From the NCBI GenBank assembly GCA_048013815.1, contig CM106586.1:21204001-21268000 (forward strand): DNA of 64,000 bases, given 5' to 3'. The position numbers were made by a program, and so were the translations under genes. The notes beneath the pieces were generated by a model. That model was given only the letters and a program-made list of their open reading frames with translations. It was not told the DNA's origin and made no database searches. Below, in pieces: positions 1,903-32,279 of this stretch. Source of the stretch: Setoptus koraiensis. Its lineage: Eukaryota; Animalia; Arthropoda. The stretch's first letter is position 1. Each line of letters opens with the position of its first letter.

Positions 1903-2217
1903 GGGTTTTCAAAATTTCGCGCAGTGCGTACTGCTACGCGCAGTGCATAGGAAGGAAACTTTCATTTGTCATCATCTTGTTTTGTTACATTGTTTTGTAG
2001 ATGAAAATGATTTTTTCTCTTCAAGACTCACCTCAAGACACTTGAATTATATTTACATATTTGCCATTATTATCGTCACAGTTATTGTTATCATTATAGT
2101 TATTATTGTCATCACAGTTTATTATTATCGTCGCCCATCAATCGTCTTATTCAATCGTCTTATTAGATCGGCCCCTGTCAATAAGTTAATTAGACACACA
2201 CGAGCGTATTTAGTGAC

Positions 2218-5200
2218 ATGTCGTGTGAGGTGAAACCGGTGCCATTTATTAAATTATTCCAATATGCATCAGGCAGGGATTTGTTATTACTGTTATTGGC
2301 CAACGTTATGATTTTATATTCGTCTTTTAACATACCTCTCGTCAACATCGTGTACGGTCTTATGATGCGCACCATGAACGACTTTGTCGCCAACAGAGCA
2401 AAATTTCAGCAAGTGGCCCCCCAACAAACAAGCACGGACTTGAGCGGACAGCTGACAACATTGTTGACAACCGATAATTCATATCAACAGTCGGATTATA
2501 ACACGAGCAACTTGTTGGGGCCCAACCAGATGAACGGCTCGACGGAGCAGCCTAACAGCCTGGCCGAAGCCGAGCACTTATTCATGGATGAATCGTACAG
2601 ATTGTGCACGATAGTGATTGCGTTTGGCGTAACGCGATTGTTCACCCTTTACATTGGTCTGTTACTTTTTAATATTGCCGCCGCCAATCAGGCCCGTCGT
2701 GTCAAGATAATGTTCTTCAGGTCGCTGTTGCGCCAAGAAATCGAGTGGTTCGAATCGAACAGAACGGGCGATTTCGCTTACCGGCTCACAACGGATTTGA
2801 GCAAATTCGAGGACGGAATAGGCGAAAAAATAGCCCTGTGCCTGAATGCCCTGTTCGCCTGGATCGCCTCAGTGGTGTCCTCATTTTTCTACGGCTGGGA
2901 ACTGACGTTGGTGTGCCTCATACTGGTGCCATTCACCATTATTATCACCACCATCATTGCCGAAATACAAGCGAGTTACTCTATCAAGGAGAGCGCCGCT
3001 CTAAGCGGGGCCTTCGCAATCTGTCACGAAGTGCTGTCGTCCATACGCACCGTGTTCGCCTATTCGGGCCAACAAAAAGAGCACCAGCGCTTCCGGTTGG
3101 CCCTCGATCATGCCTACAAGCACGCTGTCAGGCGCAACATATTCTCTGGACTAAATTTGGGCTTCACCTGGATGTCGGGCTATCTCGGCTTTGCCATTTG
3201 TCTTTTGTACAGCACAAAATTTTACAATGTTACTGCGGGCGAACAGGCCGGCTACGACGAGGCGGCCATTATAACCATTTTGTGGAGCGCCGCCGGTTGC
3301 GTATTTCTACTCAACAGAATGATGCCCTTCATCGAGGTCATTCAGATGGCGCGCGGGTCCGCGGCAAACATTTTCAGCGTGATAGAACGTGACTCGAAAA
3401 TCGATGTCACCTCGTGCCACGGGCTCCGGCCCAAACATTTCGAGGCGCATGTAAATTTCGACCGGGTCTCATTTACCTATCCGGCCACGGGGGCGCCCGA
3501 TCAGACCGCCAGCCAAGAGAGCAACATGACCAACGAAAACAATGAAAACAACAGTTTCGGCCACTCGCAAGCCAGCTCGACAGCGGCACAGCACGACGGA
3601 CAGCGGGGCGGCGGCGGCGGCGGCCCGCCAACGGCCGCCGGGCCGGGCGGCAAACTGAACAACAACTGCAAGCACGAGCGCAAATCGCTCAGTCCCATCA
3701 GCAGCGGAAGTGGGTCTACGAGCACCACGGCCGAGCCGCAAGATGTGGCGGCGTCCTCTTCGTCGTGCCCGCCCACGCCCAGCACCAGTCAGCACACCCT
3801 GGCGGACGACGACGACTTGATAAACGACGACGACCACGACGACGACAACGACGACCAGCCGACAAACAACGCGCCCACCCTGGCGGACATTTGCATAGAG
3901 GTGAGGCCCGGCCAAACGGTGGCGCTGGTGGGCCCGTCGGGCAGCGGCAAGAGCACCGCGCTGTCGCTGTTGCAGCGCTTCTTTGAGATACAATCGGGCA
4001 CAATATCCATTGGCGGCTACGACATCAAGCAGCTCAATCTCGGCTGGTTGCGACAACAATTTGGCGTTGTCACCCAGGAGCCCGTGCTGTTCGACATGTC
4101 CATTGGCGACAACATACGACTGGGCGCCCGGCCCGGTCAGCTGGTGACGCAGCACGACATTGAGCTGGCGGCGCGCAGCGCAAACGCGCACTATTTCATT
4201 AAGCGGCTGCCCGCCGGGTACGACACGCGGGCCGGCACGCGCGGCATTCAGCTGTCGGGCGGCCAAAAGCAGCGCATTGCCATAGCGAGGGCGCTCATTC
4301 GGCAGCCCAAGATTTTGCTGCTGGACGAGGCCACATCGGCTCTGGATCTCGAGAGCGAGTCCATTGTGCAGCGGGCACTGGATCAGGCCCGCATAGGGCG
4401 CACCACGTTCATTGTGGCGCACCGGTTGTCGACGGTGCGCAACGCGGACAAAATTGTCGTCTTTGACAGGGGCACCATTGTGGACAGCGGCACCCACGAG
4501 GAGCTCATACAGAGGCGTGGCTTGTACTATCAGATAAACGCGCAACAGAAGCACGGACTGGATTTGGTGGCGCCGGGCGGCGGCGGCCCGGGCAGCATTA
4601 GGCGTAACTCGTTGCTGGACTCGCTGCGGGACACGCGCGAATCGCGCTCCCTGTCCATATATTCGACGGGCGCGTCGACCGCGTGCGGCAAATATGTCGG
4701 CTTCGGGGCTGCGGGTCACGGCGGAAATGGGGAGGGTCTGAGCGACGCCGATCAGCACGGCAGCAGCCTGCATCATCAGCAGGCCGAAGAGGAGCGCTCG
4801 TTTGCGGCGGCGGGCAGCGGACTGTACGCGGGTTTGCGCTGCGACGATCTGCTGGCGGCCGGCGACATGACGGCGGCGGCGGCGGCCGGCGATCATCACT
4901 GCCCGGCCGACCCGAAGGACGGGATGGGCTGGCCCGAGGGCGCGGGCGAGTCGCTGCCGCTGATGGACGCGCACGGGCGGCGCGTCCGCAACCTGTCCGT
5001 GTGGGCAATTTTGCGCTTCATCAAACCCAACGTGACCTTTACAACGATCGGCATAGCCACCTCGCTGCTCATGGGCCTGTGCATACCCATATCGGCCATT
5101 ATAATAGGCGACATTGCCAATTTGTTTTCCACCGACGATCCGGATAAAATACGGCACGGACTGTACACGCACGGCCTGTTGTACATGGTTCTGGCGGGTT

Positions 5201-6939
5201 TTGCGCTCGCCATAAGCTTCGTGCAAGTGCTCACCTTCGGTACGGCCGGCGAGCGCATTGGGGTACATTTGCGGCTGGGCGGATTTCAGGCCATTCTGCG
5301 GCGCAACATAACCTGGTTCGACAATAGACGCAACAGCCCGGGCTCGCTGTGCGCCCGACTAGCGTCCGACGTGGGCAACGTGCAAACCATAACCGGAAGT
5401 CGGACAGCGGTCATATTTCAGTCGGTGAGCATACTGGCCACAACGCTCATATTTGCCATTTATTTCAATATAAAATTTAGCTCATTGTGTGCACTGTTTG
5501 TGGCCATACTACTCATGACCACCGTGTTACAAGCACATTATGCGGGCAAACTGACCGTTAGCAATCGCGAATTTGACTCAAACATCGGCAAAATAGTGCT
5601 AGAGTCATCGGCCAACATTAAGACAGTGGTCAGTTTGCACCAAGAGGAATATTTCATCAGGCGCTTCGAGCAAATGCTGCACACGGACAGGCGCAGCTTT
5701 AAGCTGGACAACCACATCCGGTTGCTCATGGAGAGCCTCAAGTACGCCATGACGGCCATCTCGAAGGGCTCGGCCTTTTACTTTGCGGCGCGCATGCTGC
5801 TCCGCAACGAGATCACCATAGACGTCATCTTCAAGCTCATAGAGATCATCCTGTACGGGCTCACCGAGGCCTCCAAGAGCCTCATTTTCATCAGCGATCT
5901 GGAGAAGGCGCGCCGGGGCGCACAGAACCTCTACAAGCTCATATATACGGAACAGTATTACGACTTGGAGTCGCCCTACAGCACCAACAACAACAACAGC
6001 CAGTATCCGTTTGAGCGCGACGCCAACGTGAAAATACTCATGAACAACAGCAAAAACCAACAGTCTGTCGAGCGCCACAAGTGGCCGTCGCAATTGTTTG
6101 TCAGCATGCTCAGCCAGCAGCGGCAGCAACTCGCCAATGCGCCAGCAAAAATTATACACAATCCCAACTATTACGATAACACTCCGTGTCAGGGCAATAT
6201 TCACTTTGAGAATGTTAGCTTCGCCTACCCGACTAGACCGGGCGACACCATATTGCGCTCGCTAAATGTCGACATACCCGCGGGCAAGTCCATTGCGCTA
6301 GTGGGTAGATCGGGTTGCGGCAAATCTACCATTGTGCAACTGCTCGAATGTTTCTATCAGCACTCACAAGGTGTCATCACGCTGGACGGAAACGATTTGC
6401 GCCACTTACCTGTTGAATGGTTGCGCAAACAAATAGCGCTGGTCAGTCAGGAGCCAACGTTGTTGAGTTACACTATTGGCGACAATATTCGTTATGGTGA
6501 CAATTCGCGTCATGTGCCCCACGACGAAGTTGTCAAGGCCGCACAAACGGCACAAATACACGAATTTATTATGTCACTTCCGGATGGCTACGACACTAAA
6601 TTGAGCGAGGCCAACAGTATGCAATTGAGCGGGGGCCAAAAGCAACGGATTGCCATTGCCAGGGCGCTCGTTCGCCAGGCGCCCATTATGGTGTTTGACG
6701 AGGCAACGTCGGCGCTAGATACCAAGAGCGAGCACATTGTTCAGCGGGCCCTCGAGCAGGCTCAGCTGGGCAAAACGTCCATAATGATTGCGCACAGATT
6801 GTCCACTATTAAAAATGCCGACCGGATATTGGTGCTCAAGGATGGCCTTGTCATAGAGCAGGGCACCCATCAGGAATTGTTGGAGCGGCGCGCCGAATAT
6901 TACCGCCTGTTTAAGAACCAATCAACTTTAAATAAATAA
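2218..6939 (+). CDS. ABCB1: ABC transporter subfamily B full transporter (P-glycoprotein/MDR-like), 1573 aa, intronless
   Basis: TMD-NBD-TMD-NBD layout. NBD1: GPSGSGKS (3931), QEPVLF, LSGGQKQRIAIARAL, ILLLDEATSALD, VAHRLST. NBD2: FAYPTRP, GRSGCGKS, LSGGQKQRIAIARAL, DEATSALD, IAHRLST. TMD motifs include LLRQEIEWFE and DGIGEKI. Confidence 0.97.
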   Translation: MSCEVKPVPFIKLFQYASGRDLLLLLLANVMILYSSFNIPLVNIVYGLMMRTMNDFVANRAKFQQVAPQQTSTDLSGQLTTLLTTDNSYQQSDYNTSNLLGPNQMNGSTEQPNSLAEAEHLFMDESYRLCTIVIAFGVTRLFTLYIGLLLFNIAAANQARRVKIMFFRSLLRQEIEWFESNRTGDFAYRLTTDLSKFEDGIGEKIALCLNALFAWIASVVSSFFYGWELTLVCLILVPFTIIITTIIAEIQASYSIKESAALSGAFAICHEVLSSIRTVFAYSGQQKEHQRFRLALDHAYKHAVRRNIFSGLNLGFTWMSGYLGFAICLLYSTKFYNVTAGEQAGYDEAAIITILWSAAGCVFLLNRMMPFIEVIQMARGSAANIFSVIERDSKIDVTSCHGLRPKHFEAHVNFDRVSFTYPATGAPDQTASQESNMTNENNENNSFGHSQASSTAAQHDGQRGGGGGGPPTAAGPGGKLNNNCKHERKSLSPISSGSGSTSTTAEPQDVAASSSSCPPTPSTSQHTLADDDDLINDDDHDDDNDDQPTNNAPTLADICIEVRPGQTVALVGPSGSGKSTALSLLQRFFEIQSGTISIGGYDIKQLNLGWLRQQFGVVTQEPVLFDMSIGDNIRLGARPGQLVTQHDIELAARSANAHYFIKRLPAGYDTRAGTRGIQLSGGQKQRIAIARALIRQPKILLLDEATSALDLESESIVQRALDQARIGRTTFIVAHRLSTVRNADKIVVFDRGTIVDSGTHEELIQRRGLYYQINAQQKHGLDLVAPGGGGPGSIRRNSLLDSLRDTRESRSLSIYSTGASTACGKYVGFGAAGHGGNGEGLSDADQHGSSLHHQQAEEERSFAAAGSGLYAGLRCDDLLAAGDMTAAAAAGDHHCPADPKDGMGWPEGAGESLPLMDAHGRRVRNLSVWAILRFIKPNVTFTTIGIATSLLMGLCIPISAIIIGDIANLFSTDDPDKIRHGLYTHGLLYMVLAGFALAISFVQVLTFGTAGERIGVHLRLGGFQAILRRNITWFDNRRNSPGSLCARLASDVGNVQTITGSRTAVIFQSVSILATTLIFAIYFNIKFSSLCALFVAILLMTTVLQAHYAGKLTVSNREFDSNIGKIVLESSANIKTVVSLHQEEYFIRRFEQMLHTDRRSFKLDNHIRLLMESLKYAMTAISKGSAFYFAARMLLRNEITIDVIFKLIEIILYGLTEASKSLIFISDLEKARRGAQNLYKLIYTEQYYDLESPYSTNNNNSQYPFERDANVKILMNNSKNQQSVERHKWPSQLFVSMLSQQRQQLANAPAKIIHNPNYYDNTPCQGNIHFENVSFAYPTRPGDTILRSLNVDIPAGKSIALVGRSGCGKSTIVQLLECFYQHSQGVITLDGNDLRHLPVEWLRKQIALVSQEPTLLSYTIGDNIRYGDNSRHVPHDEVVKAAQTAQIHEFIMSLPDGYDTKLSEANSMQLSGGQKQRIAIARALVRQAPIMVFDEATSALDTKSEHIVQRALEQAQLGKTSIMIAHRLSTIKNADRILVLKDGLVIEQGTHQELLERRAEYYRLFKNQSTLNK

Positions 6940-21083: not shown

Positions 21084-21089
21084 ATGATG
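21084..21089 (+). CDS. Putative start micro-exon (ATG ATG) of the sNPFR-like GPCR
   Basis: ATGATG followed directly by GTAAGT; phase 0, in frame with the exon at 22720. Confidence 0.3.
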
Positions 21090-22719
21090 GTAAGTTTCCA
21101 CAATGAACGATGTGATAAAATGATTTTCAAGTAGTGACCTTCAGGCGACAAGTGGCAATTGAAATAAACAGAGCAAAAAAACAACCTGCTGAAATCACGT
21201 GGCTGCAGCCACAGTCGGCACATGTGTACTTATCCCAAAGGCGCTGCAAATCCATGTTTGCTGTGGATAGTATTGATTTACTTCCGGTTTTTGAGATCAA
21301 CTCAGCAGCTATCTGCATCTTGCACCTCATAGAATAGCTAATCAGAATTGGAAATCGCAACTATAGTTCGATTTTTAAAGTGATGCCAGTGCCTCTGTAG
21401 TATTTGCCATAAATTCGGTGCAAAACACTTAGGAAATCAGTTTGTCACAACTCATGAATGGTGTTCTGGCAGGAGCGTTTCGAATGGAAGCCACATGGCT
21501 TTTATTCAAAAAATCAAAGCCAATTTTATTCTTTTATCGGATGAACAAAAGAGGAAAAAATTGCTTCTTTTCATGTGTTCAGATCGGAACAGAGTCCACG
21601 CTCGGCCTTTTTTTCCTTTTCTTTCTGCCGTTCATTCCCAAATGGTTTGGACCGCAAGTGGAAAAGATGGGGAAAAGTGGCAAAAAAAAACGAGTTTTTG
21701 TCAGCACACCGCTCTTGAACTATTTATGAAGCTTAGGGATTCACGAGTTGATGGCTGTTATTTACGATGTTTTTCCTAGAGTGAAATGAATATTCACAGT
21801 GATACTTTATCACTTCCTATAGCGTCTCTACTGTGGACAAGATGAACTGGCAGTAGCTTTAGCGAAATCTAAAATAACTGAGCAAGTGAAAAAAAAAACT
21901 CTCACGATCATTTCGGATAATCGTTCATTGGGGAATTATGTTGCTTTCCACATGGTGAGTCTGAGATGTTGTCACCTCCATATTGAGAGAGAGAGAGAGA
22001 AAGATGAAACTTTGTATCTGAAAGAAAGTGGTGCAATCAAAGCCAGTGTAAAAATCGGGAAAATAGTCGCACTTAACATTCAACTCACTATTCGACTCCA
22101 AGTTTTGCTCAGCATTTGTTCTTTTCGGTCGTCATAGCAAGAATTTCGCGTTTGGTTATGATGTGAGATGTGTCCATAGAGGCGCAAGAACTGTTTCATT
22201 TTTGCTTTATGTACCAGAGGGTTGTGCACTTCCTGGAATAAAGTCATCAGCTACATCTTGTAGACGATCAGGTATTAATTCGTAATACCAACTGGCAGTG
22301 TCTTGTGGGATTTATTGGGCCCATACTGAATGTCAGAATGTGTTGAATCGGGCCAAGCTGCACATGATGTGCTGATGAGATTAGCCGAGTAAGAACTGGC
22401 GTCGTTTTGCCAAAAGCCATAGGACACGAATGAATTGAATGGTTATCGCTTATACGCAACCCGAACTTCGAGTAGCCGAATCTTGCGCTTGCTCAATATC
22501 TACTACAGCTTCTCTTTCTGATCATAACAACGAAGGGGTCTCGCTGGCTCTGCTTAGCTAGCAATAATCACTTGCAGCCTTCGATTCGAACACTAGAGAT
22601 CTTTTGTGCCACTATGTTTAACGAATAAGCTGCACGCGTTAGTTCCGAGACAGGACAAACAAACCAACAAATGTACTAATATTATTATAATAATATTAAC
22701 ATCACACACACACACACAG

Positions 22720-26115: not shown

Positions 26116-27923
26116 CGACGAAAGAGATTGCAATCATAGCTATCTCACAAAATACATCTGAGCCCGATAAAACAACAAACTATTGAGAGTTCGAAGAGTT
26201 GTTTATAATATCCAAAAGAGGCTCGCGGGAGTCTAGAAGAAGAGATTTGACTCGATAGTGCAGTGTGCTGTATGTTGGTTGTTATACTTTGTAGGGACCG
26301 GGGGCGCAACCGAACGCGTGGGTCACTAATTAATATAATGATCTATATCAATCAACTCAGTCTCAGTTCATTAAAGTCGGAAGAGCCAAAATAGAGGAGC
26401 TGCTCTAGGATAAGCGGCCCCGGTCAGTTCCGTTTTTACTTGTGAGCTCATATAATACGATGTTATCTTGATATCCTTCCTTTGTCATTGTTGTTGCATT
26501 GGCAATTGCTCGAATCACTCATATCAAGATTCCCAGAATTTCCGAATCTAAATGAGCAAACGGGCAAGGATCACTACAATGACATCTGATAGAATCGCTA
26601 TCATAAGTTGTAGGTGGCTCCAATTACACCAATCCGACTGCATATTGTTAATATTATCATTGTTTGGTTGGTGCAATGGCACAACTATCGCCTCCATCAA
26701 GCAGTTATTTTTCGATAAATCATTTTTGGTCTTGCTGAGCTTGCAACCAACAAATTATGCAATCTAGCCATTAGTAAGCTAGGAAAAGGCAACAGCGACA
26801 ATTGCCACTATAATCTAACACAAACACATTGCCAAGGGCAGAATATCTGATCACCTGGATTACTTCAGCCAATTGTGTTATTCTCGATCATTAATACAGT
26901 GGTGGGTACTTAATGATATGCGAAACCAATATAATTAGAACCAAATATAATGGCAATAGTATCAGATTATTGTCGCTCTTGACGCCTATCGACTAGTATC
27001 TGTATTGAGTCTATCTCCCCAAGGAAATATAATCAGATAGATATCACATCGATTTCATTGGACGTAGGCCTTGATCCTCAGACGAAATGCCATTAGCCTG
27101 GCGAATTGTACAGACTTGTATGAAATTGCCCATTCAATTTGGAGATCCAACGAGCCCCAAGGGTCAATCATCTACAGTGATATTTGTATTCATCATCAAT
27201 ATATACGGATACATATTGTCATGTTAGCACAGCCCTTGAAGTGTCTGAAACTCATCGAAACTACTAACTGATCAGTGATAATTTACGTCATCGTTAGTTT
27301 TGTTCTGCGTTTTAGTCTGACCGGCCTCGTCTTTTTCGAGAGCGGTACCAGTAAATTCATACGACGCTTCGATGAATTACATGACTTTCGATGTGGATTG
27401 TTAGCGAAAGCCATAGGGAAATTGAGGTTGGTCTTGGCAAGATAGAAATAACTGATGGCGTCGGCAATTGATTCTCATCTCAGTTGCATATGCTGCAAAG
27501 CTGCTCCTGAGAATTGTCATTTCAGCCCATCCGGTTTATAAGATTCCTCTTAGCTCGGGTCAATCGAGACTTTCACAGAGCCGGAGCGAGAGAGAGAGAG
27601 AGACGAATTATTCATCATATCCTCTAAAGCGAAGCCGAATTCGGAAATAATTTCAATTCTAATCAGTTTTCGCTAGTTAGTGTACCGTGAAAAAAATCTA
27701 TTGGATCATACAGAGAAATGACATCACTAGAATATGTCAGACTAATTTATGTAGTAGTTTATTCTGATCAATGCAATCACTTCAGACTTTAAATTGCTCA
27801 CCGATGGTCATGTCATCGCTTGGTGGCGATGACATAACAATGAGAGCAAGAATTTTTAATTTTACTTTATTCCACTCTGACATTAATGCGTTATAACTCT
27901 CTATTTATCTTTGCCCCCATCAG

Positions 27924-30900
27924 CAGATAGACATCATCCATCATTGCCATCATCACCATCATCATTCTAGGCGTTTGCATGAGGCCATAAGGCAGCTCAA
28001 CTATAAGTTAGCGACAGTCAACTATCTCAATTTATCACAAGCAGTCTCAAGAAGCTATAGGAGAGAGGTTAAAAGTAAGCATGATAATAAAATAATTATC
28101 ATCAATCACAATAATACTCATCGTTGTGCAAATTACAAAAGTCTCCCATGCTCTTCCGCCGTTGAAACAAGCCGATGCCTTCTTATAATTTTATATCTTT
28201 TTATCAAGACTGGTGCACAAACAAATTTCTTCGCAATGTTGCTCATCGCCTCAACACTACCCCAACCCCAACCACAAGCCCAACCTCAACCACAACCTCA
28301 ACCACCATCAACACCGCAAGCACCTCCAACAATAGCAACACCAACAAAAATAATGATATCAACAGCAACAGCAACAACAACAACAACTCCAAGTGCAGTA
28401 ACATTATATTTTGTAATCAATTCAAGCCAACTGAGTGCCTTATCAAAACTTGACAGAATTTCGGCTCGTCATGGTGCGTGTCGCAAGTTACAGTTAGAAT
28501 CATCAAGATTTATTTGTGTTTGTGTCGTATGCGGTCGCAATCGTTTGCTCCACATTACTGCCAAGGAAGCTGTTTCAATGCAGTTAAGACAACGACGACG
28601 CCAACAACTCATCATCATGTTAATGACGGCGGCACTCGTGATAGTAGTGTTGTGCTGTCGTCAAAGTGACGTATCAATTGTTACAACGATAATTGATGAT
28701 AGTGATTGCGCAACAATAACAAGAACGACGTCGAGTTTACTAAGCTCGTATTCAAATGCTTGTCAAATAATAGAAACACAGTGCAGCAAATTTACTAGAT
28801 TAATAATGGTGCGTTTTGAAGAAATAGTTGCATCTATCGCCACGGCAGCAGCTAATGCGCTCGCAAGCCTAACTAATGCAAAATTTATGGCCATTTTAGT
28901 GTTTCTTAGGCAACGACAATTTAATAATTGTCACCGCCATGATGACAAGAGCGCACAATTAGATAATTATGAAAATTGCATCATCAAATCATTGTTGTAT
29001 CAACACAATTGGCATGCAAGCAATTCGTCGTCGTCGTCGTCGCTCGTGGCTTGCTGCTGCTGTTGTTGTTATGTTGTGTTGAGCAACACTTACGTAATTG
29101 ATGGTGACTCAATGTCGAATGGAAACAAGCAACAAATCATTGGCAGCCATGTAAGAAGAATGTTATGCCAACTAATTGTCACTTGGCCGTATAAGGATGC
29201 GCATAAGTCACAATCAATATCACTGCTGGCATTTATGTTTGTTTTGCTCACAGCAGCGTTCGCCTGTCGCCTTTGTGATCCAATAGAAATACTACTGCCA
29301 TCTAGTCATCACAATCTGTCGTATAATTGGTGCGTCGACTCACCTGTTGAGGTTAAAGTGCCATCAAACAAGCGTCTCATTTCTATCATCAGTAGCGTAG
29401 TTTTTCGTCTGACAGGCTTACGAAATGGGAGCCTGTCAGTGGCCTCATTGAGTTGTCGCCACAATCCTTCAATTCATGGCAATGATGTAGATTGTGTGCC
29501 CCATGAGCAGATTTCATCAATTTGCATAATATTCGCCACTATCACAACTGCCACCAATAGTCGCCAAACAATCGCCAATCATGTGACTGAAGACCCGAAA
29601 CGAGTAGCGAGCCTCTCATTCGAGTCCGTGGTGAATTTGTCGGACAATGACGCCAACTTCATGAGCGGACATAGTAAATCATTGTTGCACACATTGCGGC
29701 AGCAGCAGCATCAGCAGCATCTATTTTCACACTTAAATTCACACAAAAATTGTAGCTTGCTAAGGAACCGTTGGCAAGCTGAAATGCTACGCGAACAACA
29801 ACACCATAACAACAACAATCTGGAGACGGCTATGAGGCTCGACGAAGCTCAGACGTTCCTCTCAGATAACACGACTAGCCAGATTGATGGCGAAACAGTT
29901 AAAACAGCTGCTCAAACTTTAAGAATATCAGCACAAGCTCATGGGCGCAATGCCAAAAATGGCAATCGTCGATGGATTGGAATAGCGATATTTTACAACA
30001 TGTTCATAATGCAAATTGTTTTATTGCATTTGCTATTATTGGCCCAGCAAACTGTTCATGGTTTTCAGCTAGAAGTGTCAATAAACAGCCATGAAGAGGG
30101 CCCAGAAAAGACACTGCTCAACACTAGCAACACTAGCGACGGCATTGACACAACTACTACTCAGTTGGACAATTCTTTCGGTCAAGCAGCGCCATCGAAC
30201 CAGTCTGATGGCTATGACACAACTGACATGGACAATGTGGCGCCAACAAATGATACAAATGATGAGTCGTTTGAAACGCAAACACAAACAGAACAGGACA
30301 GTGCTGAAAATTCAACAAATTCACCTGAAGACACAGATTCAAATCCTATATCACAATCAATAGATCCAGACAACCCGCTCGAGCCCATTAATTGTACCGC
30401 TATGGCGCTAGCAAAACAAACTCACCTGCCCGATTTGTTCACCTGGCCGATATACGTTGCCTACACTCTTATATTCAACATTGGTGTTAGTGGCGCTTGC
30501 ATTGTCGTTTATGTCATTTACAAGAGCAGAAAACTAAGAAGAATGGGTAACACTTATTACCTGTTGGCCAATCTAGCCGTAAGTAACATAGTGATGGGAT
30601 GCACAGCGGTGCCCATAACACCCCTGTACCTGTTGGTGTACCAGAAATGGGTATTTGGTAGATTCTTTTGTCATTTTTTGCCATTTATCCAAGGAGTGGC
30701 CGTTTATGTGGAGGGATTTTCGTTGTTGTTAATGGCCATAGATCGCTACAGAATAGTCATGAATCCATTCATACCCCGTATATCGTTGGCCAGAATGAAA
30801 TTGTTTGTGGGTTTCACATGGATTCTTGCATCGGTGCTGACATTGCCCTACGGCTACTACGTTCGCTTGTACCCGGACCAGTGTCCAGAGGATCAATATT

Positions 30901-32279
30901 GCGAGGAGGTCTGGCCTAGCGAATCATATCGAAAGATATTTGGTGCCTCAACAATGTTGGTTCAATTTTTGGTTCCGTGGTTCATCATAACCGTGTGTTA
31001 CTTGGAGGTTAAATTTAAATTGGACGATCGCTCGCGACAAGGCAGACCGGGCGCCAATCTAGTGCTGAGACAAACTGTTGCCAGATCTATGCCGTCCACT
31101 AGCCGACTGTTGAATACAACAACAAATAATAATAATAATGCACAACAAACAAACAATGGTATAACTAGCTGTTCTAGCATGAAGAGGCACCATCATCGCC
31201 ATTGTAATTTGTATAGAATATCTGCCGCCCAAGCGTCAGCGTCGTGCGTTTCCTTTTTATCGGGATACGCTGCGAATCAGCGTCAAGCTAACCAGTCACC
31301 GCAAGACATCACCGCATCCATACCTTGCCTGGTGGTTCATGATCCCATTACAACATGCGAACAACCGGAAACAACAACGCTGAACAACACCATTAATAAT
31401 CAAGATAATCAAGTGCAACACGAAGACAAAGAAACACTTCCGGTGCAACCACCCATTGTAGTGTGCCAAAAGGACCCACAAGAATTGGTGCAAACCAACC
31501 AGCAACCGTCTTGCTGCGTTGCCGAAGTGCACGACGCTGCCGACCAATCCGGCCTCATCATGATACAATTACACACACAAACAATACCTGTTGCCATAGA
31601 GGAACGTCACCATTTAGAAATCGATCCACCTACAACAAGCAGTATCATTAATCAGCAGACTTCTTGCTCCAGTAAGGAAAAATCAAAATTTTGTAGTTAC
31701 CTGTTGCATTTCTGGTGTCACACTATTTGTCGTCGACAGGCCAGTTGCAGCTTGAACGCAAGCAACAACAATGTCAACAACATACATGCTCCCAACAATG
31801 GAACAACAACAAATCAACAACAGTATGAACAACAGCAGCAAGGCACAATAATGTGCAATTGCCAGACCCATTGCGAAGACAGTTTGTGCTGCTGCAACAT
31901 CAATTGCAACGAAGAGAGAAATCTACAACAAATACTAGAACGACAGGTGAATCGAGAACAAAAAGCGAGAAGTTTAAATACCACCCTGATTGCCATGATT
32001 GCCTTCTTTGTCATATCGTGGCTGCCGTTAAATTTGCATAATATTGCCCAAGATTTCTTTCGTGAATCGCTCAATTCACATTTCACTCTTTGGTTTTTCA
32101 TGGTGGGACATTTAATGGCCTCCAGTATGATTGTGCACAATTTGTGGATTTATGTCTGGTTGAATGAGCCATTTCGCGAAGAATACACAATAATGATGGG
32201 CCCAATATATGCAAGTATTTTTCCTCGCTTCATATCGTCAAAGTTTTGGTGGGGCAAGCAAAAACCTCAGCACCTTTAG
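27924..32279 (+). CDS. sNPFR: Class A neuropeptide GPCR, short neuropeptide F receptor-like (main exon; 7TM ~30440-32190)
   Basis: NLAVS..AVPITP; WVFGRFFCHFLPFIQG; AIDRY..NPF.PR; LPYG.Y; YCEEVWPSESYRKIFG; QFLVPW..CY; SWLPLN; WLNEPFREEY. These match sNPF/PrRP-type receptors. The frame is open from 27897, with a pyrimidine tract and CAG acceptor at 27923. Confidence 0.9.
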   Translation, partial: QIDIIHHCHHHHHHSRRLHEAIRQLNYKLATVNYLNLSQAVSRSYRREVKSKHDNKIIIINHNNTHRCANYKSLPCSSAVETSRCLLIILYLFIKTGAQTNFFAMLLIASTLPQPQPQAQPQPQPQPPSTPQAPPTIATPTKIMISTATATTTTTPSAVTLYFVINSSQLSALSKLDRISARHGACRKLQLESSRFICVCVVCGRNRLLHITAKEAVSMQLRQRRRQQLIIMLMTAALVIVVLCCRQSDVSIVTTIIDDSDCATITRTTSSLLSSYSNACQIIETQCSKFTRLIMVRFEEIVASIATAAANALASLTNAKFMAILVFLRQRQFNNCHRHDDKSAQLDNYENCIIKSLLYQHNWHASNSSSSSSLVACCCCCCYVVLSNTYVIDGDSMSNGNKQQIIGSHVRRMLCQLIVTWPYKDAHKSQSISLLAFMFVLLTAAFACRLCDPIEILLPSSHHNLSYNWCVDSPVEVKVPSNKRLISIISSVVFRLTGLRNGSLSVASLSCRHNPSIHGNDVDCVPHEQISSICIIFATITTATNSRQTIANHVTEDPKRVASLSFESVVNLSDNDANFMSGHSKSLLHTLRQQQHQQHLFSHLNSHKNCSLLRNRWQAEMLREQQHHNNNNLETAMRLDEAQTFLSDNTTSQIDGETVKTAAQTLRISAQAHGRNAKNGNRRWIGIAIFYNMFIMQIVLLHLLLLAQQTVHGFQLEVSINSHEEGPEKTLLNTSNTSDGIDTTTTQLDNSFGQAAPSNQSDGYDTTDMDNVAPTNDTNDESFETQTQTEQDSAENSTNSPEDTDSNPISQSIDPDNPLEPINCTAMALAKQTHLPDLFTWPIYVAYTLIFNIGVSGACIVVYVIYKSRKLRRMGNTYYLLANLAVSNIVMGCTAVPITPLYLLVYQKWVFGRFFCHFLPFIQGVAVYVEGFSLLLMAIDRYRIVMNPFIPRISLARMKLFVGFTWILASVLTLPYGYYVRLYPDQCPEDQYCEEVWPSESYRKIFGASTMLVQFLVPWFIITVCYLEVKFKLDDRSRQGRPGANLVLRQTVARSMPSTSRLLNTTTNNNNNAQQTNNGITSCSSMKRHHHRHCNLYRISAAQASASCVSFLSGYAANQRQANQSPQDITASIPCLVVHDPITTCEQPETTTLNNTINNQDNQVQHEDKETLPVQPPIVVCQKDPQELVQTNQQPSCCVAEVHDAADQSGLIMIQLHTQTIPVAIEERHHLEIDPPTTSSIINQQTSCSSKEKSKFCSYLLHFWCHTICRRQASCSLNASNNNVNNIHAPNNGTTTNQQQYEQQQQGTIMCNCQTHCEDSLCCCNINCNEERNLQQILERQVNREQKARSLNTTLIAMIAFFVISWLPLNLHNIAQDFFRESLNSHFTLWFFMVGHLMASSMIVHNLWIYVWLNEPFREEYTIMMGPIYASIFPRFISSKFWWGKQKPQHL

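Follow-up and report, generated by a model that had tools for sequence, protein, structure and literature searches.

A 701-codon reading frame maintained ahead of a divergent sNPF/PrRP-type receptor and its possible translation as an N-terminal extension

Receptors of the sNPF type carry 18–126 aa before the TM1 core and a short third intracellular loop (ICL3), in agreement with the statement in an earlier sequence-only reading of this DNA that sNPF receptors have short N-termini. A second group, made up of distant relatives and referred to here as the long-N clade, is known only from unannotated SRA/metagenome contigs (P0052, P0074, P0036, P0057/P0157, P0109, P0067, and others). The clade is strongly supported, and its genes are single open frames that encode 130–907 aa before TM1 (163–912 open codons) as well as an expanded ICL3. 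In these receptors, basic residues lead into a single signal-like hydrophobic segment, and an acidic glycosylated stretch comes next, with a Cys some 20 aa ahead of TM1. The leaders that precede the segment span 14–215 codons, with basic leaders of 14–200 aa and most being 14–60 aa long; they are hydrophilic, contain no extra spans except in P0074, and have an ATG 4–16 codons past the upstream stop. A further point of comparison is provided by signals that lie within a longer polypeptide. Internal signal peptides of viral polyproteins are cleaved by host signal peptidase, and the long cellular signal peptides we know of comprise about 50–150 residues, not about 700.

The gene described here belongs to a small mite-like genome and lies on the forward strand of the window, by which we mean the whole 64,000-nt stretch of DNA that was analysed. 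Between its bounding stops (Table 1), the frame 27897–32279 contains no stop in the 1460 codons before its terminal TAG. In contrast to the sNPF-type receptors, the gene carries 850 or more open codons ahead of the TM1 core and an ICL3 some 300 aa long, and its leader of roughly 700 codons is also unlike those of the long-N clade. As in other long or internal signals, a hydrophobic core and a small-residue −3/−1 site lie far from the N-terminus and are followed by a lumenal glycosylated domain. Here, however, cleavage is putative, and the part preceding the signal bears no sign of a functional protein.

Table 1. Features of the receptor locus, in window coordinates
Feature	Position	Strand	Remarks
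Candidate first-exon end	21087–21095	+	ATG/GTAAGT: canonical donor directly after the start codon; exon would end at 21089; speculative
Second candidate first-exon end	21952–21960	+	ATG/GTGAGT; exon would end at 21954; speculative
Candidate 3′ splice site	27850–27923	+	AG-free 72 nt; branch-like CTGAC; first AG 27922–27923
Open frame bounds	TAA 27894–27896 upstream; TAG 32277–32279 downstream	+	
Open leader	27897–29999	+	701 codons without a stop; homology to other sequences undetected
First in-frame ATG	28236–28238	+	113 codons into the frame
Basic hydrophilic leader end	29661–29981	+	From in-frame ATG 29661; GRAVY −1.06
Signal-peptide/signal-anchor-like segment	29982–30062	+	About 23 hydrophobic residues
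Acidic S/T-rich ectodomain	30063–30455	+	6 N-glycosylation sequons; strong coding periodicity
Seven-transmembrane core	30456–32153	+	Pfam 7tm_1 spans 30495–32153
Expanded ICL3	31029–31946	+	About 300 aa; coding periodicity not detected (p = 0.37)
Stop codon TAG	32277–32279	+	

The C-terminal half of the frame matches the class A GPCR profile (PF00001) over positions 2–260 of 260, with an E-value of 7.5e-36 and 124 bits against a cut-off of 30.5. Of the microswitch set (N1.50, D2.50, DRY, CWxP, NPxxY), only DRY is intact, at 30741. N1.50, D2.50, and P7.50 are all replaced in the core, with G-A for G-N in TM1, S-N for S-D in TM2, SWLP in TM6, and N-L-W-I-Y for NPxxY in TM7. Among solved structures, the PrRP receptor matches best (E 2e-38), with NPY Y2, Y1, and Y4 next. 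The best database matches, at 38–41% identity, belong to mites, scorpions, lobster, ants, and mosquitoes and are labelled, for example, sNPF receptor or PrRP-receptor-like. Phylogenetically, the query falls inside a group with 100/100 support that holds the sNPF-type receptors and the long-N clade; in the careful tree, its place within that group is a polytomy, and its branch is very long (2.1 changes per site). A quick tree groups it with the long-N clade (SH-aLRT 85), and a joint clade is not rejected by the AU test (p = 0.31 and 0.36). On these similarities, the C-terminal half is classified as a divergent class A receptor of the sNPF/prolactin-releasing-peptide type, and the earlier assignment is right at the level of this group.

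The architecture of the long-N clade recurs in the query, which has the long N-terminus, the basic-flanked segment, the juxtamembrane Cys, the long ICL3, and the TM6 motif NIAQD, the last found in the long-N clade and the query only. The juxtamembrane Cys (codon 30393–30395, about 20 residues ahead of TM1) is likewise common to both and missing from the aligned sNPF-type receptors. The amino-acid permease gene that adjoins three clade members is not present at the query locus. The signal-like segment noticed in the earlier reading after KNGNRRW exists, its hydrophobic run having the length of a membrane span. K..RR precedes the core, and V-H-G precedes F-Q-L-E; cleavage after V-H-G is possible because these residues fit the −3/−1 rule. 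Two start codons lie within the segment, ATG 30000 in a good context (caacATG) and ATG 30009, with the basic n-region situated upstream of ATG 30000. The S/T-rich, N-glycosylated ectodomain claimed to follow was recovered as an acidic stretch of 131 aa with six predicted N-x-S/T sites, 25 D+E, and 2 K+R. Ten relatives contain counterparts of the hydrophobic segment. Since the relatives also have a basic leader before one signal-like segment, the internal signal is probably a family trait that this gene has taken to an extreme.

The claim that 701 stop-free codons precede ATG 30000 holds, as no stop was counted among them, and the hydrophobic stretches, C6 run, and PQ/T/Q tracts named earlier were all found in frame. 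Beyond its open part, the same frame is interrupted by 30 stops over the preceding 500 codons and by 24 over the following 500, while the other five frames of the leader stretch hold 48 and 52 stops on the forward strand and 55, 32, and 47 on the reverse strand. At the lowest of these other-frame rates, the chance of 701 stop-free codons is about e^-33. In addition, all six microsatellite arrays in the leader have a period divisible by three (3n), compared with 41 of 103 flanking arrays (Fisher p = 0.005). Homopolymer runs of at least 6 are absent from the leader, against a mean of 5.0 in non-coding DNA (P = 0.0014), a depletion like that of the receptor coding sequence and the ABC coding sequence. 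Both the 3n-only repeats and the absence of homopolymer runs span the entire leader. These three independent signatures (no stops, 3n-only repeats, and no long homopolymers) show that the reading frame of the leader is maintained. They separate it from the flanking non-coding DNA and support one of the two options put forward earlier, that of an open leader under selection. Furthermore, the leader cannot act as a scanned 5′UTR because 32 of its 45 ATGs are out of frame.

Frame maintenance is accompanied by a composition that does not resemble that of a protein. The amino-acid composition, codon usage, and hydrophobic-segment count of the leader are like those of translated non-coding DNA; three hydrophobic segments are found, versus 2.5 ± 1.5 in translated non-coding DNA of the genome. 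In the first ~550 codons, codon usage, composition, and 3-periodicity are indistinguishable from stop-deleted non-coding DNA, though the codon-usage test is weak here, as genuine AT-rich genes of the genome (WD40, PTB) score non-coding-like too. Protein-like composition begins only near 29550. Within the leader, such a composition is confined to the stretch 29661–29981; this stretch terminates in the K..RR that abuts the hydrophobic segment, and it is this part that the basic leaders of the long-N relatives resemble. A parallel is found within the receptor itself. ICL3 must be translated and yet lacks detectable periodicity, whereas the expansions of the clade members show it clearly. ICL3 looks as unconstrained as the leader, which counts for translation of the latter. 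Non-coding-like composition is also all that speaks for an open frame without biological meaning, produced by chance or by an assembly artefact. This explanation is scarcely credible, since its probability is that given above or lower, the boundaries of the frame are sharp, two more independent signatures concur with the missing stops, and nothing in the region except simple repeats occurs in more than one copy.

Searches for relatives or a source of the leader returned nothing in Pfam, in PDB, or in the two contigs of its own genome, where neither a paralogue nor a source copy was found. Word-based database searches also yielded no match. No close relative of the gene came up either, in collections that may omit this genome and near ones, so that its absence has no bearing on orphan status. 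An exhaustive search whose query included leader residues 261–701 gave no leader relative among the best 150 matches, which were all receptor-driven and could mask weak leader-only matches. The leader was not recognized by a protein language model (Atlas score 849, below 2300), and no similarity to any part of the relatives was found. The idea of a tandem receptor copy had been prompted by Galendromus model P0001, which consists of two fused receptors, and by a weak PDB match to a somatostatin receptor (E 0.2). A decayed copy of this kind was rejected, as the leader frame scored no higher against a profile built from 109 cores than other frames or upstream DNA did. A repeat or transposon origin was also rejected: the leader is single-copy except for CAA/ACA-type simple repeats, and internal duplication was not found. 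No Rfam matches occur in the window.

These results bear on two further explanations. The other earlier option, a receptor polyprotein, sees in the leader a functional pro-domain, polytopic in the membrane, that signal peptidase would release from the receptor. Hydrophobic segments and a −3/−1-compatible V-H-G do exist, and maintenance of the frame implies that the region matters somehow. However, the number of segments is that expected at random, the composition is random-like, and the leaders of the relatives are hydrophilic and, P0074 excepted, have no extra spans. Conservation, a domain, a relative, and a GPCR remnant were looked for, the first three across Pfam, PDB, the databases, the own genome, and Atlas, and none was found. 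The pro-domain proposal is therefore unsupported, and we regard it as very improbable. Alternatively, an upstream orphan exon may have recently lost its stop or spacer and joined in frame to a receptor that once started at the signal peptide. Such a gene fusion would account for the resemblance of the signal-like segment and its good-context ATG to a former N-terminus, and it fits the dissimilarity of the leader to every part of the relatives. It is nevertheless improbable, given that no source copy is found in the two contigs, that the composition of the leader is unlike that of an established protein, and that the relatives already carry leaders ahead of the segment.

At its upstream boundary, the frame has no in-frame ATG in its first 113 codons, whereas the leaders of the clade begin close to the upstream stop; four out-of-frame ATGs (27979, 28081, 28148, and 28175) lie ahead of 28236. 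An acceptor-like site lies 27 nt past the opening of the frame, and the in-frame TAA sits within the candidate acceptor zone. The last 40 nt of this zone are 70% pyrimidines, and the exon would begin at 27924 in phase 0. The true introns of paralogous GPCR genes here show the same arrangement of branch motif, AG-free run, and first AG. A small upstream exon carrying the start codon is conjectured, and two speculative ends for it are listed in Table 1. A 117-nt intron running from the in-frame ATG at 27804 to 27923 is unlikely, as its donor reads GTCATG, compared with AG/GTRAGT in 6 of 6 real donors examined. In eriophyoid mites, 5′ introns are preferentially kept (PMC7738191).

Judged from the sequence features, we assign a probability of roughly 55% to the reading that the 701 codons form a translated N-terminal extension of the receptor, probably entered through a 3′ splice site at 27923/27924 and selected for openness only. 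The choice of start codon is the point at which this reading meets a shorter product. A receptor starting at ATG 29661, 29784, 29832, or 30000 would have a leader of 0–113 aa, as in most relatives, and the 590–700 codons upstream would be a relic of coding sequence given up recently or be translated in a minor long isoform only. The onset of protein-like composition near 29550, after ~550 codons that appear non-coding in all compositional tests, agrees with such a start, as do the caacATG context of ATG 30000 and the 14–60 aa leaders of most relatives. Still, 588 codons would remain open by chance with a probability of only ~1e-18 at the local stop rate. To have avoided all stops, a relic would have to be younger than an estimated ~4% neutral divergence, and frameshifts would also have to be avoided. 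The 3n-only repeats and missing homopolymer runs, moreover, run through the whole leader. We therefore consider a short receptor rather unlikely. Among further observations, distant relatives have 29–215 open codons ahead of their hydrophobic segment, and the counterparts of the basic residues that precede the core in relatives are located here upstream of ATG 30000; both count for the long product. Against it count the plausible signal peptide headed by caacATG 30000, the lack of an in-frame ATG in codons 1–113, and the three extra hydrophobic segments farther upstream, which could disturb membrane topology.

Under the translated-extension reading, the leader frame would be kept open by selection since the receptor sits downstream, while approximately the first 550 residues would evolve without detectable sequence constraint. 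The large exon would probably be entered at 27923/27924, with the start codon supplied by the small upstream exon; ATG 28236 may be an alternative start for the long product. The last ~110 residues of the leader would form a basic, hydrophilic cytosolic tail, and the segment 29982–30062 would serve as an internal signal, either as an extra span with the N-terminus inside or as a signal cleaved by signal peptidase. Either mode would place the glycosylated acidic stretch outside and orient the seven helices correctly. Cleavage of the segment would remove the leader along with it, which would explain why openness, rather than sequence, is conserved.

Gene callers that choose ATG 30000 as the start would probably annotate a truncated product. 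If the leader is translated, it would be among the longest N-terminal regions on a peptide-type class A receptor and a clean natural case of a long polypeptide held open by selection without detectable sequence constraint. The case bears on coding-region inflation, on the tolerance of cells for random-like hydrophobic sequence before a signal, and on the origin of new protein sequence inside existing genes, for which such a leader, if real, may be a nursery. It also points to a receptor clade with an internal signal-like segment that is not among the named entries in the clusters looked up. Tentatively, and with considerable doubt, a lineage of class A neuropeptide-type receptors, probably of gall and rust mites, may bear ahead of the seven helices a cytosolic leader plus an additional signal-anchor or cleaved internal signal. 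In this species the leader may have grown to at least 700 random-like residues that are translated and then discarded or tolerated, which would be a natural instance of selection on openness of the frame alone.

The receptor gene occupies an open frame of 1460 codons, and the 701 codons ahead of the ATG at 30000 (the leader) hold no stop in the receptor frame, as against 48, 52, 55, 32, and 47 when that stretch is read in the other five frames. The boundaries of the frame are sharp, since the flanking 500 in-frame codons carry 30 stops upstream and 24 downstream. Even if stops came at the lowest local rate, a stop-free leader would arise by chance with a probability of about e^-33. The open frame described in the sequence-only reading is thus borne out as real and far beyond chance, and every sequence detail quoted there was found.

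Coordinates of features (window positions unless a contig of the same genome, G000:C1 or G000:C2, is named)
Feature	Position	Strand	Remark
ABC-B transporter exon	2194-6939		52-59% GC, surroundings ~40%
Antisense open frame on ABC-B exon	3469-5358	-	629 codons
Upstream region	7000-27896		~21 kb; no open frame >131 aa, either strand
Candidate first-exon ends	21087, 21952	+	ATG/GTRAGT
Stop preceding open frame	27894-96	+	TAA
Candidate acceptor, first AG	27922-23	+	
Leader	27897-29999	+	
Signal-like hydrophobic segment	29982-30062	+	
7TM core	30456-32153	+	
Third intracellular loop (ICL3)	31029-31946	+	~300 aa
Stop ending open frame	32277-79	+	TAG
Receptor-like match	G000:C2:13430975-13431544		open frame of 2617 codons
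Receptor-like match	G000:C2:10447536-10447835		open frame of 1344 codons
Receptor-like match	G000:C1:18961539-18961946		open frame of 1182 codons
Receptor locus L013	G000:C1:23926339-23929740		intron between two receptor exons

The reading frame of the leader is maintained. All six of its microsatellite arrays have periods of 3, 6, or 12, compared with 41 of 103 in the flanks (Fisher p=0.005); only 300 nt before the open frame begins, there is a (GA)10 array. Homopolymer runs of at least 6 are absent from the leader, against a mean of 5.0 in equal-length non-coding windows (P=0.0014), and are likewise scarce in the receptor and ABC transporter coding sequences. Both signatures, which are independent of the stop count and were compared with flanking non-coding DNA, match the product of selection against frameshifts; together with the missing stops, they support the earlier suggestion of an open leader under selection. 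In addition, of the 45 ATGs in the leader 32 are out of frame, which bars a scanning ribosome from reaching the ATG at 30000 through it. It follows that the leader is either coding or absent from the mRNA.

The other option raised from the sequence, a polytopic pro-domain released by signal peptidase to give a receptor polyprotein, is not supported, as the leader has neither relatives nor a recognizable domain. It matches no Pfam family, no relative in the PDB, and nothing in word-based database searches, and no paralogue was found at the protein or DNA level in the two contigs of the genome piece (48.76 Mb) except CAA-type simple repeats. No remnant of a second receptor was detected inside it. 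Its three span-like hydrophobic segments equal the expectation from translated non-coding DNA of the same genome (2.5 +/- 1.5), so its hydrophobic stretches do not point to a designed polytopic domain. The language-model recognition value of the leader is 849, whereas 91% of known-family proteins reach 2300. In amino-acid composition it is as close to the base-composition expectation (distance 0.10) as out-of-frame translations are (0.11-0.18); real coding parts give 0.13-0.45. Codon usage gives no frame-0 advantage (-0.146 bits per codon versus a non-coding null of -0.164 +/- 0.036), though this test is weak, as two genuine AT-rich genes score likewise. Three-base periodicity is not above that of stop-deleted non-coding DNA (p=0.18), and a protein-like, hydrophilic, basic composition begins only at about codon 550 (~29550). 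ICL3, which lies between TM5 and TM6 and is necessarily translated, serves as an internal control and also lacks excess periodicity (p=0.37). Since it is as periodicity-free as the leader, long, compositionally neutral, open insertions are a property of this receptor gene.

The receptor itself is of the sNPF/PrRP type. Its Pfam match is limited to the C-terminal half (7tm_1, E 7.5e-36), and among solved structures it is closest to the prolactin-releasing-peptide receptor (2e-38), then to NPY Y2, Y1, and Y4. In an exhaustive search, the best matches (38-41% identity over TM1-5) bore names including sNPF receptor, PrRP-receptor-like, and NPY-receptor-like, and came from mites, scorpions, a lobster, ants, and mosquitoes. 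DRY is kept, while A occupies N1.50, N occupies D2.50, and L occupies P7.50; TM6 reads SWLP in place of CWxP, and TM7 reads N-L-W-I-Y in place of NPxxY. The receptor lies on a very long branch (2.1 changes per site); its signalling may be atypical, or the constraint on it relaxed. Three receptor-like matches elsewhere in the genome also lie within long open frames (see table), so this locus may not be the only one with a GPCR core inside a very long open frame. The public model of Galendromus occidentalis LOC100897503 (P0001/P0151) joins two sNPF-type receptors, of which the first has no TM1, into a single protein and is probably a merged tandem pair.

Lower in the match list is a long-N clade (100/100 support) whose 12-14 cluster representatives all come from SRA-derived or metagenome contigs that lack annotation. 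These proteins have 130-907 residues ahead of TM1, and their ICL3 is expanded by up to 560 residues. Six of its loci have 163-912 open codons before TM1 and many stops in other frames (L019: 912 open codons versus 49-113 stops), with the ATG 4-16 codons past the upstream stop. Ten members carry one signal-like hydrophobic segment after basic residues, 14-200 residues from the called start (P0074 has three hydrophobic segments), followed by an acidic, glycosylated stretch and a Cys ~20 residues before TM1. The present receptor resembles them in its long N-terminus, long ICL3, basic-flanked segment, acidic glycosylated stretch, and juxtamembrane Cys, and the TM6 motif NIAQD is confined to it and the clade among 157 proteins fetched. 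The 7TM-core tree places it at a polytomy, and the AU test does not reject grouping with the clade (p=0.31). The segment and its flanks have counterparts in the clade, and the putative internal signal peptide noted earlier is therefore probably a family trait. The leader is exceptional in how long it is, with 695 codons before the segment versus at most ~215 in the six loci (197, 215, 60, 51, 29, and 155), and in its missing protein-like composition, whereas the relatives' expansions have clear coding periodicity. In three distant relatives (L020, L042, and L044), an amino-acid permease gene follows the long-N receptor gene on the same strand, then an arrestin gene in L042; these genes are single open frames on compact contigs, a neighbourhood not shared by the window genome.

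An acceptor-like site lies 27 nt inside the frame opening, with a 72-nt AG-free zone, a CTGAC branch-like motif, and 70% pyrimidines. Its layout is shared by genuine introns of paralogous receptor genes from the same genome, whose donors are AG/GTRAGT in 6/6; in L013, TACTAAC-like motifs precede ~280 AG-free nt before the acceptor. An exon start at 27924, in phase 0 and with the start codon carried by a separate exon further upstream, fits because the first in-frame ATG comes only after 113 codons, four out-of-frame ATGs precede it, and 5' introns tend to be retained in eriophyoid mites (PMC7738191). No convincing gene was found in the 21 kb upstream, where only six canonical donors lie on the receptor strand; two of the six follow ATG (P ~0.02) and are candidates only. 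The scarcity of long open frames here looks unusual beside the ~200 kb sampled just upstream of the window, with its 34 open frames of at least 250 codons; the stretch may serve the receptor gene as a large 5' intron or as regulatory DNA. ATG is the third commonest trinucleotide before canonical GTRAGT donors (10/239; window plus G000:C2:21000001-21200000, L021-L040), a hint that this genome repeatedly has first exons whose last codon is the start codon. The antisense frame on the ABC-B exon is most likely a by-product of that exon's GC content.

We infer that the leader would be translated, its final ~110 residues forming a cytosolic tail, and that the hydrophobic segment would insert with its N-terminus inside, to be either kept as an extra span or cut after V-H-G. 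The three chance-like hydrophobic stretches further upstream might disturb this topology. On cleavage the leader would be discarded, which would account for selection acting on openness only.
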